Of a stretch of DNA of 64,000 bases, positions 1,810-52,898 are shown one piece after another; the first letter of the stretch is position 1, and each line of letters begins with the position of its first letter. The notes under the pieces were generated by a model that ran no database searches, was not told the origin of the DNA, and saw only the letters and a program-made list of their open reading frames with translations. The DNA lies in the NCBI GenBank assembly GCA_040285825.1, contig JAUPSS010000007.1, forward strand, positions 2,950,689-3,014,688. Direction: 5' to 3'. The stretch comes from Eukaryota sp. TZLM1-RC (Eukaryota > Protista > Metamonada: BaSk clade). The translations under genes and the position numbers were made by a program.

Positions 1810-1874
1810 CAATCCTCAAGGATTTCCTCCTGAGTTGTCTGCGTCACGTTTAATTCCTCTCAGTAAGAAAAATA

Positions 1875-2704: not shown

Positions 2705-3522
2705 TTTCATGAATTTGTCAATTGATAACATGGCAGTAATTTGTGATTTTAAAAATGCCTTCAATTCAGTTAAGCGCAATGCAATTCTTGAGTCTTTGAA
2801 AACGTCCCCTGTTCTGGCTGAAGTTGCCCCTCTGTTTGAGTTTTTGTATTCCAAACATTCGAATCTTGTTTTAGACACTGACTCTATTCCTTCATGCTCA
2901 GGTGTAAAGCAAGGTGATCCCATTGGTCCTTTTCTCTTTTGTGTTGCTCTACATCCTTTGTTTGAAAAGTTGAAGTCTCGGTTTCCTGATTTGGAAGTTG
3001 TTGCTTACATGGATGACGTATCCCTTATTGGTAATGCTTCTTTAGTACACGAAGCTGTTATTTATTTTGGTAAACTTGCACTGAATATTGGTCTAGAACT
3101 TAACGCTAGCAAGTGTCGAGTTCTTGGGCGTTCGTTTCATTCAATTGTGCTTAACGATGAAGAAAATCCTTTTGTGGATTATCAAAATGATTGTATTGAA
3201 TTACTGGGTACTTTCATTGGAAATGAATCAGCCATTAGTAGATCATTACATAAGGAAATTGAAAGTGCATCTGCTAAGTTGGATGAAATTCAGGCTTTGC
3301 CGTTGAAAAAACATATTAAATTCCATGTGGATAGGTTATGCTTCAGTTCTTAAGTAAATCACCTGATTCGCTCTATTCCACCGGATTTGACCACACCTGA
3401 AATCAAATTGTTTTTGTCTCGAAGAACCAACTTTTTGGTTGACTTACTTAGTGTTAAGAACATTAAGGATATTCCACTTCACTGTTTGAGGTCACATTCG
3501 TATGGTGGTGTTGGTTGAATTA

Positions 3523-22175: not shown

Positions 22176-23089
22176 AGTCTAAAAGTCAATATCTTCAAAA
22201 TATCTTCTTAATATCTTCAAAACAAGCTTCCACACCATCAAACCTCACAACAGCAATTTCTTCGTAATGTGCACTGACAGACATCAAAGCTTTCGAAATC
22301 ATTTTGGGAATTGTTTTGAAAATAGTAAAAACAATACGATTTAGCCACAAGCGACGATCAAAACGTTTATTCATTCTTCTTTTCACAAGATTTTCAAAAT
22401 CATCAATAAAATTCATAGCAGTTTTTCCAAGACGACCATACAACGATATAGCAAATGGGCAAATTTGGTAATCTACATGGCGAACATGTTTCAATTCTTT
22501 TAAAGGATTTGCATACTTTTTCCGTTTGTACAATTCGGAGTCATCAAGGGGGGATACTTCGGATTGAGCATTTTTCAAGGCATTTTTCTTGCAAACATCC
22601 ACTGTTACGACATCAACAACATTCATGACATCATCAAACGAGGGCACAACAACATCAGCACGTCGTTTTCCATATTCTGAATCTCTTACGCTTTCATTTA
22701 TATCAAGAGACCTCAACAAAGGTTCTACAAAAGATTCAATATGATAGGAATTACACATTGCATGGATTTGATCTCTGACTGCATCATGCAACGTAGAACG
22801 ATAGGAAATAAATCTATTACAATTAAATAAATGTGATAATGTCAAACCAGCTCCACATTTGCAAAACAAATCATTGGGCAAATTACAAGGCCATAAATAA
22901 CAACGCATTCTCATAGCAGTGGTCCATTGGTCGTCATTCAAAAATAGACCATAAATCTGGGGAATTTGATTTATCAAAACTGCAGATGAACTGTCCTTCA
23001 AATCAATCAAAAAATTGGCAAAAGCAGGATTTTCTTTCTTAGCCGTGCTAAGTCGAACAATAAAATCCTTTCTTTCAAATTTTTTCAAA

Positions 23090-23166
23090 TTATTATGAGT
23101 GGTGTAGTGGCTACAGCAAAGCGTCCATTGAACGTTTTCTTAGGTTCGATTCTCACCGTGAATTTA
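23090..23166 (+). ncRNA. tRNA-like / SINE-head sequence with Pol III A and B boxes
   Basis: TGGTGTAGTGG (23100-23110) and GGTTCGATTC (23143-23152) at tRNA spacing; stem AAAGCGT/ACGTTTT with a 7-nt loop; acceptor and T stems pair poorly. Confidence 0.65.
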
Positions 23167-24224
23167 TGAAACCACTGCCATTAAAAGGTTCTAAAAAATG
23201 TTCTATTTGTGGTATCAGTGGTCATAATTCGAGAACGTGCCCTGAAAAACAAAAAAGAGAATTTGAATTAAAATCTGCTCAACAAATTCTCAAATGTTCT
23301 GTTCCAGCTGTTGCCGTTGTGAAAGGTGCTGAAAATAATGTTTCTGACGGTCAACAGTTAATTGCTTCTAGTGTTCCCTCTTCTTTCCCTTCTGAAAACA
23401 GTAATTTTTGTTGTCCATTTTGCAAAAAAGATGTTGCAGATTCACGAAATGGTCGAAAACTTCTGTTTTGTACGAATTGTAAAGCCGTTGATACCGTAAG
23501 ACCCCCGATCCGGATCCCAGTAGAAATAAGTCCCGCCAGCACAATCCCCTTCTCAATGGAAATGAGAAATTTTACTTCTGAATTGAAAAATAATAAGTGG
23601 AATATTTGATCCTTCTGGAAGTATTTTGCTAGAAAAAACAAAAATTGTTTTAAGAAAAAATTTGGAAATAGAAAAATTGTAAAATCAAGAATTTGCCGAA
23701 AATTGTGCTTACGTGGTCGTTATGGTGCCGCAAAGCAGTCTTTGTTTTCCTCTTCTTTGGCTGATGCAAACTCTGATACCCTTGAAAAACTTCAAAAGTT
23801 GCATCCTCAAGAAAATTTCAAGTGCAGCAAGCCTGATGTGTGTCCTTTTTGGATTGAAAATCCTATTACTGCAATTGAAGTTCTTAAAGCTATTCAAAAA
23901 TTACCTAAGGGGAAAGCAGCAGGCCCATCTGGAATTTCTTTTGATCTCTTAAAAATAGCGTGTTCCAGTGCTCCCGAAATTGCTGATGATCTAGCCCACT
24001 ATTTTCAACAATTAATTGTTTTGAAAATAAATCCTCCATTTGAATTACTCGCAGCACGTCTGATTGCTTTAGTAAAGCCTGGAAACGGAATCAAACCTGA
24101 TGGAATACGCCCAATTGCTGTTGGTGAATCTCTTTTTCGTTTGCTGGCATCAATTGTCTTCGATCGTGTCAAAGACAAAGCTTCTACATTTTTGAATCCT
24201 CATCAATTTGGAATCAAAACAATT

Positions 24225-25124
24225 TTATTGTTCGACTTAGCACGGCTAAGAAAGAAAATCCTGCTTTTGCCAATTTTTTGATTGATTTGAAGGACAGTTC
24301 ATCTGCAGTTTTGATAAATCAAATTCCCCAGATTTATGGTCTATTTTTGAATGACGACCAATGGACCACTGCTATGAGAATGCGTTGTTATTTATGGCCT
24401 TGTAATTTGCCCAATGATTTGTTTTGTAAATGTGGAGCTGGTTTGACATTATCACATTTATTTAATTGTAATAGATATATTTCCTATCGTTCTACGTTGC
24501 ATGATGCAGTCAGAGATCAAATCCATGCAATGTGTAATTCCTATCATATTGAATCTTTTGTAGAACCTTTGTTGAGGTCTCTTGATATAAATGAAAGCGT
24601 AAGAGATTCAGAATATGGAAAACGACGTGCTGATGTTGTTGTGCCCTCGTTTGATGATGTCATGAATGTTGTTGATGTCGTAACAGTGGATGTTTGCAAG
24701 AAAAATGCCTTGAAAAATGCTCAATCCGAAGTATCCCCCTTGATGACTCCGAATTGTACAAACGGAAAAAGTATGCAAATCCTTTAAAAGAATTGAAACA
24801 TGTTCGCCATGTAGATTACCAAATTTGCCCATTTGCTATATCGTTGTATGGTCGTCTTGGAAAAACTGCTTTGAATTTTATTGATGATTTTGAAAATCTT
24901 GTGAAAAAAAGAATGAATAAGCGTTTTGATCGTCGCTTGTGGCTAAATCGTATTGTTTTTACTATTTTCAAATCAATTCCTAAAATGATTTCGAAAGCTT
25001 TAATGTCTGTCAGTGCACATTATGAAAACATTGCTGCTGTAAGGTTTGATGGTGTGGAAGCTTGTTTTGAAGAAATTGACTTTTAGACTGTGGTTTTGAA
25101 AATAAATTAAAATTAAATTAAAAA
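24225..25124 (+). mobile_element. Family C 3' fragment in A
   Basis: TSD AAAACAATT at 24216-24224 and 25125-25133; empty site at about 44402. Confidence 0.9.
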
Positions 25125-26037
25125 AAAACAATTGATGGTGCTTCTGTTGCTGCTATTGCCTCTGATACCTTTTTTAATGCAGAGGAAAATAATTTTATTT
25201 TTAATCTCGACTTTAAAAATGCTTTTAATTCTGTAAAGCGAGAAGCAATTTTTGAAGTTATTAAATCTGATTTTCCTGAGCTATCGAGTTTTTTCTACCA
25301 TTTTTATGGTAAAGAATCAGATTTAATTTTTAATTCATTTGCTCTTAAATCATCTTCTGGAGTGAAGCAGGGAGATCCTTTAGGCCCATTATTGTTTTGT
25401 TTAGCTATTCACAAAACTTTAAATATCATTAAGCAAAAATACCCTTCTATAAAAATAGTTGCTTATATGGATGATATATCCTTGATTGGTTCATTTGATT
25501 TAATAGAATTGGTTGCTCAAGAAATTGCCGATTCATATGAAAATATTGGGCTTCATCTTAATGCCAGCAAATGCCTTCTGATTGGGTCTTCTGCTCAAGA
25601 CCTCGTGATAAACGATTCTATTGTTCCTTTTACTAATTATAGTAGTGATGCTTTTAAGTTCCTTGGTTGTTGGTTAGGAAATGTGCCTCAAATTCAGAAT
25701 GAATTGCAAGTTATTTTGGAAAAAATGAAAATTGAACTTGATTCAATTTCTTCTTTAGATATAGAAAAGCATATTAAATTTTTCATGCTTAAAATTTGCT
25801 ACACTGGGAGAATAACCCACATTTTGAGATCTTGTGCTCCTTCCATAGCATTAGATTTTTGTCGTTCATTCAATTCATTGAGAACAGAATTTTTTGCTGA
25901 TTTATTGGATGTAGAACCAGGAATGTTGAAAAGTCACTTATTTTCTTCAGCAAATTTGGGGGGTATTGGATTTACTAAATCTTCAATTTTGTGTCAATCA
26001 GCATTCTTGGGTGGTGGCAAAAATTTTATTTATGAAT

Positions 26038-26125
26038 CGGATATATTTATGTGTGGAAGCTTGTTTTGAAGATATTGACTTTTAGACTGTAGTTTAATAA
26101 TAAATTAAAATTTTTCAAAAAAAAA
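26038..26125 (+). mobile_element. 88-bp family C 3' tip in A
   Basis: TSD ATTTATGAAT at 26028-26037 and 26126-26135; 13-nt 5' filler; empty site at about 45305. Confidence 0.9.
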
Positions 26126-27308
26126 ATTTATGAATTTTCTCGTAGATTTCCTGATGATTCTCATCTGTTAGTTCCCAATTGCAGTCCCTATTTGTATGAG
26201 TTATCTTGTGAACTTGAAAAATTACCGCCACAAATTTGGACCAAATGTTTTCCTCAATCAATTCAAGAAATTCCAAACCGATCTCTATTTAATTTACAGT
26301 TTTGCTGTAAAAAGCTTCAACAAAAATTGTCAAAGATTTTTGAAAGCTTGGATTTTGATGTTAGACTTGGCTTGGCCAAGAAAAAGAATCCCGCTTTTGC
26401 AAATCTTTTACAAGATATGTGTGACAGTACTTCTTCTGCCTTAGTAACAACAATTCCACAAGTTTATGGTACTCTCTTATCCGATTCTGCTTGGACTCTG
26501 AATATGAGATTTCGTTCCTTTATCTGGCCTGATAATTTACCTCATAATTTAATTTGTAAATGTTCTCGAGAAATTACAACTACTCATTTGTTAAATTGTA
26601 AACATTTTATTACTTTTAGAAGCAAGGTTCATGATGCTGTAAGAGACCAGTTATATTGTATGTGTAAATCTCATAGAATTGAATCCTTCTTGGAACCTCT
26701 GTTGTCAAATCTGTTTGATGCTGAAAATGATTTTCATAAGAATAATAGAGGTGATGTCATATTACCTGGATTAGATGGAAGCTTCATTTTATTGGATGTA
26801 ATGTCTGTTGATCCTTGTAATGCCTCAAATGAAAGGCTTGTTAATTCTGAAATTCATAATCCCCTTTCAAATGCTGAAAATTTTAAATTCAAAAATACAA
26901 TGAACCTTTGTCCAAATTGGCCAGTCTACAGCATGCAAAATACAATTTGTATCCATTTGTATTTTCCCTTTTTGGTTCACTTGCACCAACTGCTTTACGT
27001 TTTTTGGATGATTTTGAAATGATTGTAAAGAGAAGAACTGGCAGAAATTTCAACAGATTGTTTTGGCAAAATAGAATTGTGTTTTCTATTTTTAAAGGGA
27101 TGTTGAAGATGGTTTCTGATGCTTTGCTTTCTCTTGGATCTCACTATGAGAGAGTTGCATCTAGTGTTTTTGTTTTGGGAGAGATCGATTTTTTAGATGT
27201 TGATTTATAGGTTTAGAATAAAAAGGTTTCGCTTAAAAAAAATTTTTTCAAAAGATGTCGTTGGAGCTTTTTCAACGCAAATTTTAATGAATACAAACTT
27301 CTGTCTGG

Positions 27309-46024: not shown

Positions 46025-47812
46025 TGGATTTTGATGTTAGACTTGGCTTGGCCAAGAAAAAGAATCCCGCTTTTGCAAATCTTTTACAAGATATGTGTGA
46101 CAGTACTTCTTCTGCCTTAGTAACAACAATTCCACAAGTTTATGGTACTCTCTTATCCGATTCTGCTTGGACTCTGAATATGAGATTTCGTTCCTTTATC
46201 TGGCCTGATAATTTACCTCATAATTTAATTTGTAAATGTTCTCGAGAAATTACAACTACTCATTTGTTAAATTGTAAACATTTTATTACTTTTAGCAGCA
46301 AGGTTCATGATGCTGTAAGAGACCAGTTATATTGTATGTGTAAATCTCATAGAATTGAATCCTTCTTGGAACCTCTGTTGTCAAATCTGTTTGATGCTGA
46401 AAATGATTTTCATAAGAATAATAGAGGTGATGTCATATTACCTGGATTAGATGGAAGCTTCATTTTATTGGATGTAATGTCTGTTGATCCTTGTAATGCC
46501 TCAAATGAAAGGCTTGTTAATTCTGAAATTCATAATCCCCTTTCAAATGCTGAAAATTTTAAATTCAAAAAATACAATGAACCTTTGTCCAAATTGGCCA
46601 GTCTACAGCATGCAAAATACAATTTGTATCCATTTGTATTTTCCCTTTTTGGTTCACTTGCACCAACTGCTTTACGTTTTTTGGATGATTTTGAAATGAT
46701 TGTAAAGAGAAGAACTGGGAGAAATTTCAACAGATTGTTTTGGCAAAATAGAATTGTGTTTTCTATTTTTAAGGGGATGTTGAAGATGGTTTCTGATGCT
46801 TTGCTTTCTCTTGGATCTCACTATGAGAGAGTTGCATCTAGTGTTTTTGTTTTGGGAGAGATGGATTTTTTAGATGTTGATTTATAGGTTTTGAATAAAA
46901 TTAAATTTAAAAAAAAAATGGATTTTGATGTTAGACTTGGCTTGGCCAAGAAAAAGAATCCCGCTTTTGCAAATCTTTTACAAGATATGTGTGACAGTAC
47001 TTCTTCTGCCTTAGTAACAACAATTCCACAAGTTTATGGTACTCTCTTATCCGATTCTGCTTGGACTCTGAATATGAGATTTCGTTCCTTTATCTGGCCT
47101 GATAATTTACCTCATAATTTAATTTGTAAATGTTCTCGAGAAATTACAACTACTCATTTGTTAAATTGTAAACATTTTATTACTTTTAGCAGCAAGGTTC
47201 ATGATGCTGTAAGAGACCAGTTATATTGTATGTGTAAATCTCATAGAATTGAATCCTTCTTGGAACCTCTGTTGTCAAATCTGTTTGATGCTGAAAATGA
47301 TTTTCATAAGAATAATAGAGGTGATGTCATATTACCTGGATTAGATGGAAGCTTCATTTTATTGGATGTAATGTCTGTTGATCCTTGTAATGCCTCAAAT
47401 GAAAGGCTTGTTAATTCTGAAATTCATAATCCCCTTTCAAATGCTGAAAATTTTAAATTCAAAAAATACAATGAACCTTTGTCCAAATTGGCCAGTCTAC
47501 AGCATGCAAAATACAATTTGTATCCATTTGTATTTTCCCTTTTTGGTTCACTTGCACCAACTGCTTTACGTTTTTTGGATGATTTTGAAATGATTGTAAA
47601 GAGAAGAACTGGCAGAAATTTCAACAGATTGTTTTGGCAAAATAGAATTGTGTTTTCTATTTTTAAAGGGATGTTGAAGATGGTTTCTGATGCTTTGCTT
47701 TCTCTTGGATCTCACTATGAGAGAGTTGCATCTAGTGTTTTTGTTTTGGGAGAGATCGATTTTTTAGATGTTGATTTATAGGTTTAGAATAAAAAGGTTT
47801 CGCTTAAAAAAA
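46025..47812 (+). repeat. Tandem 894-bp duplication of the family A 3' portion
   Basis: ORFs 46024-46887 and 46891-47781; same poly(A)|TGGATTTTG junction; shared FSSKVH variant. Confidence 0.88.
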
Positions 47813-49408
47813 ATTTTTTTCAAAAGATGTCGTTGGAGCTTTTTCAACGCAAATTTTAATGAATACAAACTTCTGTCTGGAATTTCTTGAATGGATATGG
47901 GGAAACATGATTGCCATAAGTCCGGAGATAAACTGGAAATTTCTTCTCTTAAGTTATCGAGGAATAGGCTATTTGTAGTTTCAAGAAGATTTTCGGCAAA
48001 GGATATCTTCTGGAGAATTCAAATACAAAATTTTTCCACCACCAATAAATGCAGCTTTGGTCAAATATTTTGATGAATTGAATCCAACACCGCCAAGTTG
48101 AACATCAGAAAAAAATATGATTTTTCAAAATTGATGGATCAACAGACATTAAATAAGCCAAAAATTGGGTACGTATTTTGTTAAATTGTCTACAAAAATT
48201 GTAAGTTAGGGATGGAGGTAATGATCTCAGTAAATGTGTAATTTTTCCAGCATAACAAATTTTCAAAAGAAAAAACTTAAGATGTTTTTCCAATTCAAGA
48301 GTCTTTATGACTTCTAGCTCTTTTTTAATTGAATTTAAATAATTTTCAAGGCTATCAAGTGTTTTTTCGGCGGAACCTAAATAGCAACCAAGAAAGCAGA
48401 AACTAGTTGAAGTATAATCAATATATGGAACTTCAAGGGAATTAATTATTAACTTTACATTTTTCCTAGAAATACAAAAACATTTTTGAACATTCAACTC
48501 AAGACCTATGGATTGGTATAATGTAGCAGCTTCATTAGCAACCCTATTAATTGTACTTTCTGGACCTCTTCTGCTCAAGACCTCGTGATAAACGATTCTA
48601 TTGTCCCTTTTACTAATTATAGTAGTGATGCTTTTAAGTTCCTTGGTTGTTGGTTAGGAAATGTGCCTCAAATTCAGAATGAATTGCAAGTTATTTTGGA
48701 AAAAATGAAAATTGAACTTGATTCAATTTCTTCTTTAGATATAGAAAAGCATATTAAATTTTTTATGCTTAAAATTTGCTACACTGGGAGAATAACCCAC
48801 ATTTTGAGATCTTGTGCTCCTTCCATAGCATTAGATTTTTGTCGTTCTTTTAATTCATTGAGAACAGAATTTTTTTGCTGATTTATTGGATGTAGAACCA
48901 GGAATGTTGAAAAGCCATTTATTTTCTTCAGCAAATTTGGGGGTATTGGATTTACTAAATCTTCAATTTTGTGTCAATCAGCATTCTTGGGTGGTGGCAA
49001 AATTTTATTTATGAATTTTCTCGTAGATTTCCTGATGATTCTCATCTGTTAGTCCCCAATTGTAGTCCCTATTTGTATGAGTTATCTTGTGAACTTGAAA
49101 AATTACCGCCACAAATTTGGACCAAATGTTTTCCTCAATCAATTCAAGAAATTCCAAACCGATCTCTATTTAATTTACAGTTTTGCTGTAAAAAGCTTCA
49201 ACAAAAATTGTCAAAGATTTTTGAAAGCTTGGATTTTGATGTTAGACTTGGCTTGGCCAAGAAAAAGAATCCCGCTTTTTGCAAATCTTTTTACAAGATA
49301 TGTGTGACAGTACTTCTTCTGCCTTAGTAACAACAATTCCACAAGTTTATGGTACTCTCTTATCCGATTCTGCTTGGACTCTGAATATGAGATTTCGTTC
49401 CTTTATCT

Positions 49409-52400: not shown

Positions 52401-52898
52401 TCAGGGCACGTTCTCGAATTATGACCACTGAAACCACAAATCGAACATTTTTTAGAACCTTTTAATGGCAGTGGTTTCAATTTTTCAGTTCTTTCAATTT
52501 TGTTAATTTGTGAGTTAAAAGTAGAAATAGACATTTGACTATTTGCAGTTTCAGCTGGAGAAAACAAATTTCGAGAAACGGAGTTGTTAATAGAACGCGC
52601 AACAGAACGCAAGGAACGTAATGGTGGTTTTTCTGTGTTTTTTCTGGTACAATGATCAGTTTTTGAATGAAAATTTTTTTGAGATGAATTTCGAGCATAG
52701 CTTGTATTGTGGGGAGAGTGGGGAAGTGGAGTGGATGAGCTTGATCTGACTGGTAGAATCTTTGCTTGGGCGTTCCAATCAGTATCAGAGTCACTATCAG
52801 CCAAAGGCATCGTTTTGACAGAGAAACAGTACGACTTTGACGCCTTGACAGAAAGTGAAATATGAAAGGGTTGACTAAGGGAGGGAGAAAAAAAAATA
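49409..52898 (-). mobile_element. Family A full-length element (about 3.5 kb)
   Basis: Poly(T) at left; TSD TTCCTTTATCT at 49398-49408 and 52899-52909. Confidence 0.92.
49444..52810 (-). CDS. Family A polyprotein (about 1120 aa: knuckle, C4 finger, RT, CCHC, RLE) with apparent frameshifts at homopolymer runs
   Basis: ORF pieces 51974-52810, 51220-52020, 51078-51302 and 49451-51085; CSICGFSGHNSRTC, CPFC...CTNC, QGDPLGP, YMDD, RGDV. Confidence 0.8.

Follow-up and report, generated by a model that had tools for sequence, protein, structure and literature searches.

The source organism, Eukaryota sp. TZLM1-RC, is presumably Skoliomonas litria, a free-living metamonad. The DNA analysed here is a 64-kb window of contig JAUPSS010000007.1 (GCA_040285825.1), lying at about 2,950,689-3,014,688; all positions given below are those of the window. 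A draft genome of S. litria has been reported, with tRNAs and retroelements not analysed in the text (bioRxiv 10.1101/2023.05.03.539051). The window consists of nested non-LTR retrotransposons. At one locus, covered by gene model P9112_011722, a 5'-truncated LINE of family A carries a short tRNA-like segment, here called the head, at its 5' end, and both interrupt a LINE of family B (Table 1). Comparison of the window with itself leaves six stretches without a second copy, of which five are LINE-derived and the sole exception is the head. An earlier reading of the window, made from the sequence only, had proposed that the head is its single non-LINE sequence, and this holds: the head has no other match within the window, and the remaining stretches free of self-matches derive from LINEs.

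Table 1. Features of the headed family-A LINE and its insertion site.
Feature	Positions	Strand	Remarks
Left target-site duplication, 13 bp	23077..23089	+	Native sequence of the interrupted family-B LINE (minus strand); empty-site match 128/128
tRNA-like head, 76 nt	23090..23165	+	Unique in the window and 12 fetched loci; 20/20 D-/T-arm positions
A box, tRNA positions 8-19	23100..23110	+	
7-bp stem with 7-nt loop, at the position of the anticodon arm	23118..23138	+	
B box, tRNA positions 53-61; distance from the A box 44 nt	23144..23152	+	
Family-A LINE, 5'-truncated at native Met111	23166..24224	+	96-98% identical to most siblings
Nested family-B 3' fragment, later	24225..25133	+	Own 9-bp duplication (24216-24224, 25125-25133)
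Family-A body, reverse transcriptase core (YMDD)	25134..26037	+	RVT_1 E 4e-18
Nested short LINE 3' end, later	26038..26135	+	10-bp duplication (26028-26037, 26126-26135)
Family-A 3' part: CCHC, restriction-like endonuclease motif, AATAAA, tail variant, poly(A)	26136..27239	+	
Right target-site duplication	27240..27252	+	Begins with three A that run on from the poly(A)

The head and the LINE are enclosed by a single target-site duplication, the 13-mer at 23077-89 being repeated at 27240-52, and the flanks when joined give family-B sequence. The empty site rebuilt in this way matches positions 41118-40991 at 128 of 128 nucleotides and is intact in more than 10 other family-B copies, which verifies the 13-bp duplication previously proposed around both pieces. 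Duplications in the loci examined span 9-15 bp, counting clean cases only; the one 5-bp candidate belongs to a head-to-tail dimer. The last 5 nt of the head (23161-65) are identical to 27241-45, directly after the poly(A). It is likely that head and LINE were inserted as a single unit, and the 5-nt inner repeat also permits two successive insertions.

The junction falls on a codon that is native to family A. Of 13 other DNA copies, 10 have ATG at the position corresponding to 23166 (AGG, ACG and TTG occur once each), and among 50 gene models 40 encode Met there. This residue is Met111 of the native family-A protein. Base 23166 therefore belongs to the LINE, which makes 23165 the last base of the head. 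The sequence-only reading had supposed that the head turned a native TTG into ATG; this arose from a comparison limited to the single native copy of the window, whose TTG at 52480 is a private variant. Nor does the accompanying idea of an in-frame fusion that created a start codon survive, as the ATG is the native Met111 and the 25-codon open frame of the head is unremarkable (it is also open in 21% of shuffles). The head stands for 423 nt of native sequence, in keeping with the suggestion that the 5' UTR and about 110 codons had been replaced, and the family-A body begins at position 424 of a 3.5-kb full-length copy, at an internal Met directly after an A6 run. Other family-A copies end at 243, 306, 313, 325, 384 and 554, so that a break at 424 is ordinary; each 3.5-kb element contains about 12-15 Met codons. 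Two further origins of the junction were rejected, namely trans-splicing, since the native sequence lacks an AG before the ATG, and twin priming, since the head is in sense orientation.

Judged from its translation, family A is an RLE-type non-LTR retrotransposon, with a single ORF in which reverse transcriptase is followed by CCHC and endonuclease motifs. The reverse transcriptase is supported by Pfam and PDB matches, with R2 proteins as the best solved relatives. The CCHC and restriction-like endonuclease motifs were read by eye, gave no profile match, and lean on established knowledge of RLE LINEs. A zinc knuckle is found in the headed copy at about 23196-23246 (Pfam zf-CCHC, weak). At the 3' end, AATAAA at 27217-22 and a rare 10-nt tail variant at 27225-34 are followed by poly(A); the AATAAA and poly(A) suggest transcription by Pol II. 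Private changes in the body of the headed copy number about 14 over 3,050 nt (9 within the first 1,059), and a C>G at 23608 yields a private TGA stop at 23607-23609. This stop had been noted beforehand together with later insertions, and both are confirmed, the insertions being two nested elements with duplications of 9 and 10 bp. They are not frameshifts of the homopolymer type; sibling copies have frameshifts, many in homopolymers, that are possibly assembly errors. T runs are numerous in the body, with 19 of T5 or more, five of T6 and none of 7 or longer, the first T5 lying at 23405, 240 nt past the junction. Runs of T5 or more are Pol III terminators, a threshold that may differ in metamonads.

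The head consists of 3 extra nt and a tRNA-sized unit from 23093 that ends in TTT and lacks CCA, so placed that the ends of the head lie no more than 3 nt from tRNA positions 1 and 73. The A box, the B box and the stem-loop between them, all named in the sequence-only reading, are present (the stem-loop in the centroid fold). No other A/B-box pair at tRNA spacing occurs in the window, where 0.06 would be expected by chance per 64 kb, or about 7e-5 per 77 nt. The head satisfies 17 of 17 box constraints and is unique in this among about 640,000 positions (about 0.3 Mb), the runner-up reaching 15. It also satisfies all 20 conserved D-arm and T-arm positions in class I tRNA numbering. Anticodon-loop positions were left out of its tRNA score because they depend on register, and that register is ambiguous: CAT by spacing, ATT by pairing and TTG by loop consensus. 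With three registers possible, an attempt to name the parent tRNA failed.

The stems of the head are degenerate, with two of five T-stem pairs and the acceptor register broken and all promoter residues intact. Its folding is insignificant (RNAfold, z -0.2), its ARAGORN score of 91.9 lies under the cut-off of 100 and near the LINE noise of 90.5, and a sequence-only HMM gives an E of 1.1. The Rfam tRNA model did not match the head, nor did it when 83 nt were scanned, and a custom tRNA covariance model likewise gave no match, a model limited by its bacterial type, being made from 19 phage T5 tRNAs. A functional tRNA, or its direct retrocopy, was rejected because the cloverleaf fails the tRNA models (ARAGORN, Rfam, RNAfold and the custom model). 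The tRNA similarity thus stands for the residues and spacing of the boxes, which suggest the label tRNA-derived, and does not extend to the cloverleaf, which is insignificant and on which the covariance models are silent. Because private changes amount to less than 1% of the body, less than one would be expected in 76 nt, and at about 14 changes in 3,050 nt one would still identify a true tRNA that had been copied along with the LINE. The donor RNA was therefore probably degenerate before insertion, resembling a SINE head that had retained its promoter. The head was also considered as coding sequence of another element and rejected, its six translations having no match among the proteins compared. 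No donor gene for it was matched in the 321 kb examined, about 303 kb without overlaps.

The relatives of the headed copy carry native 5' DNA. Protein searches and cluster look-ups yielded 64 gene models that span this region of family A, and nine of them begin at Met111: the headed locus itself and eight others. Native upstream DNA is present in all six of the latter that were fetched, with P0136 and P0155 outside this sample; P0075, a candidate for a second headed gene, turned out to be the headed locus itself. Neither the window nor the 12 fetched loci (about 303 kb, a sample biased to called genes) contain a second headed copy. Three private amino-acid changes of the headed copy appear in none of 53 other models, and it groups with no sister in a tree built from 13 5' segments, where the closest relatives extending to the codon have native upstream sequence. 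Another copy, L003, shares the rare 3' tail variant; its 5' body is a close relative, and the sequence ahead of its Met111 codon is native. As for a tRNA-derived SINE, dispersed copies sharing head and body were not seen in the window and the 12 loci, and in place of a short, terminator-free body there are 3.1 kb with 19 runs of T5 or more. Of the two origins first proposed for the headed copy, a promoter-swapped subfamily lacks support, given the absence of a second headed copy in this sample, siblings with native 5' DNA and Pol III terminators throughout the body. The evidence does favour the other origin, in which a SINE-like or tRNA-derived RNA was captured once.

The arrangement is probably the result of a one-off template jump during reverse transcription, within a single TPRT event. 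After nicking a family-B copy, the family-A protein would have begun reverse transcription at the 3' end of a polyadenylated family-A RNA and halted after about 3.1 kb at the edge of the A6 run before Met111. A short tRNA-like Pol III transcript would have served as the next template, entered by a jump at its 3' oligo(U) end and copied as far as its 5' end, and second-strand synthesis would then have flanked both pieces with the 13-bp duplication. The donor was probably a degenerate tRNA-derived RNA with promoter boxes, a SINE head or similar, and not a working tRNA. The product would be a dead end, with Pol III transcription from the head terminating at the first T runs; the stop codon and two insertions would have been acquired afterwards. 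A jump is favoured by the shared sense orientation of head and LINE inside one duplication of ordinary length, by the unexceptional break at 424, and by head ends near tRNA positions 1 and 73 with TTT and no CCA, as in a Pol III primary transcript. Promoter residues intact beside broken stems, with decay older than the insertion, point the same way. The family-A reverse transcriptase is R2-like, and R2-type enzymes are known to jump between templates, aided by 1-2 non-templated bases with complementarity to the 3' end of the acceptor (PMC8857657). Small-RNA/LINE chimeras within one duplication are documented (PMC13174262, PMC4494074), and template switching is an accepted route for small-RNA heads (PMC4494074). 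Against a jump, the donor locus is absent from the roughly 0.3 Mb read, structure-aware tRNA models give the head no score, and the break exactly on an in-frame ATG is left to chance or to the adjacent A run. In addition, the identity of the last 5 nt of the head with the start of the duplication would be a coincidence of 1-2%, by a rough estimate.

That same identity, the recurrence of 23161-65 immediately after the poly(A), lends weight to the main rival, a serious one that we consider unlikely. Here a tailless tRNA-like retrocopy would have inserted with a 12-bp duplication, its priming relying on a 5-base complementarity of the nicked target to the 3' end of the RNA, and a truncated family-A LINE would have followed later at the same nick with a 5-bp duplication. 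Tailless retropseudogenes primed by 2-18 nt of target complementarity provide a precedent (PMC5322556). Two insertions require, however, a second strike at the exact nucleotide, although more than 10 other family-B copies are empty there, and a duplication of 5 bp against the 9-15 bp of clean cases; moreover, about 0.3 Mb of LINE nests contain no stand-alone tRNA-like retrocopy. It is very unlikely that the join was made elsewhere, by insertion of a truncated LINE where a tRNA-like gene ends, the unit then being moved once through a read-through RNA or DNA-level copying. The 19 runs of T5 or more, five of them T6 and the first at 23405, speak against read-through, even if T runs in the body stay below 7, the head ends in three T only and Pol III termination in metamonads may differ. 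The head does start at a plausible Pol III start, and the 3' tail variant suggests a particular donor locus, but L003 combines this variant and a related 5' body with native upstream sequence, and no source locus was seen in the loci examined.

A propagating subfamily in which a Pol III head replaces the native 5' end seems highly improbable. Such an element would retain zinc knuckle, reverse transcriptase and endonuclease and start on an in-frame ATG, promoter replacement is frequent among non-LTR elements (PMC2881922), and tRNA heads on LINE pieces have founded SINE families (PMC4494074). This is outweighed by the native upstream DNA of six other Met111-start models, by private amino-acid changes in none of 53 other models, by the missing tree sister, and by an AATAAA and poly(A) end of Pol II type with many T runs. 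There is similarly little to commend the view that the head represents filler DNA, or part of some unsampled element, and resembles a tRNA by chance. Neither a covariance model nor the folding test supports a tRNA and the sequence-only HMM gives E 1.1, but a box pair expected at about 7e-5 per 77 nt, 17 of 17 constraints unique in 640,000 positions, ends that coincide with tRNA ends and six unmatched translations make chance a very poor explanation.

The headed copy is thus real but ordinary, a product of LINE biology in a new lineage and a known kind of accident represented by one dead copy, which does not establish a new mode of LINE expression. Under the template-jump reading it would be a natural trace of an R2-like metamonad enzyme extending its own cDNA with a copy of a cellular Pol III RNA, the kind of step from which SINE families are believed to arise, and S. 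litria would transcribe a tRNA-like RNA that is not a tRNA. Quite improbably, the head may come from an undescribed Skoliomonas family of tRNA-derived SINEs or Pol III RNAs, with Met111 head-LINE fusions propagated at least once; if true, a metamonad would provide either an RLE element with a Pol III head or a SINE family seen at its birth.

The closest known parallels are small-RNA/LINE chimeric retrocopies such as U6-L1, tRNA/L1 (PMC13174262) and U6 pseudogenes (PMC4476161). These share a 5' small RNA, here joined directly to the 5' end of the truncated LINE at 23165/23166, a 3' truncated LINE, one target duplication and, within the sampled loci, a single copy. The LINE at this locus differs from L1 in being an RLE-type element of a metamonad protist. 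Among human elements, 21 tRNA/L1 chimeras with duplications of 9-19 bp have been described, mostly antisense halves (PMC13174262), whereas the passenger here is of full tRNA length and sense; being degenerate, it follows more closely the logic of the sense Alu/L1 and U6/L1 chimeras. SINEs with a tRNA head on LINE parts (Bov-tA, SINE2-1_ACar; PMC4494074) likewise combine intact A and B boxes with decayed stems and a LINE-derived body or tail. The present body differs in its 3.1 kb and many T runs, with no second copy found in the sample, and the event is at most of the kind that founds a SINE, not a family. Tailless retropseudogenes (PMC5322556) are similar in that a small-RNA copy without its own poly(A) has its last 5 nt matching the start of the target, but they are mostly 3'-truncated at loops, and the headed copy has a LINE separating its small-RNA part from the right duplication. 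With RLE non-LTR retrotransposons (CRE, R2, R4 and related clades), family A shares the single ORF, the N-terminal zinc knuckle, reverse transcriptase, CCHC and endonuclease motif, and it differs from them in occupying many unrelated sites, with duplications of 9-15 bp and an AATAAA and poly(A) end.

Comparison of the window with itself revealed a match, 99.7% identical, between 26349-27308, at the 3' end of the headed element (the 5'-truncated family-A LINE with a tRNA-like head), and a second segment further downstream (see table). Two variants otherwise private to the headed copy are common to both, and because of this the second segment is a local duplicate of the headed element's 3' region rather than a sister insertion. 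The rare 10-nt tail variant of the headed copy also occurs at L003, another locus of the same genome, where a family-A 3' end bearing it is fused to a copy whose truncation point is 306. Poly(A) is absent at the join, approximately 3 nt there are common to both partners, and a short piece with the same variant is placed after the element's end. One possibility is that template switching occurred a second time here, with the same lineage as donor.

Coordinates of family-A and additional LINE features
Feature	Locus	Positions	Content
Local duplicate	Window	46919-47880	Headed element's 3' end, tail variant, right duplication, family-B flank; head absent
Tail-variant sites	L003	10129-11932; 15879-15910	
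Head-to-head family-A joins	Window	52899/52900	
	L004	6367/6369	
	L006	20016	
	L002	77-80	
Additional LINE family, pieces	Window	1810-1873; 2012-2196; 2705-3519	

Across the window and the 12 other fetched loci (L001-L012), the 5' truncation points of family A, six plus that of the headed copy, are grouped at 243-554 of 3,535 nt, alongside approximately eight full-length copies. At several loci a family-A 5' end directly adjoins an inverted 3' fragment, and these head-to-head joins suggest that the family often undergoes twin priming or inversion. The gene-model protein P0136 (P9112_013725) carries the family-A zinc-knuckle region (~197 aa) three times in tandem. The additional LINE family is scarce within the window, its pieces being 85-100% identical to proteins P0128 and P0132, both from a 664-kb contig. 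Well over 100 'hypothetical proteins' among the P9112_* GenBank gene models of this assembly are LINE fragments, and some, including that of the headed locus (P9112_011722), bridge nested insertions via false introns.
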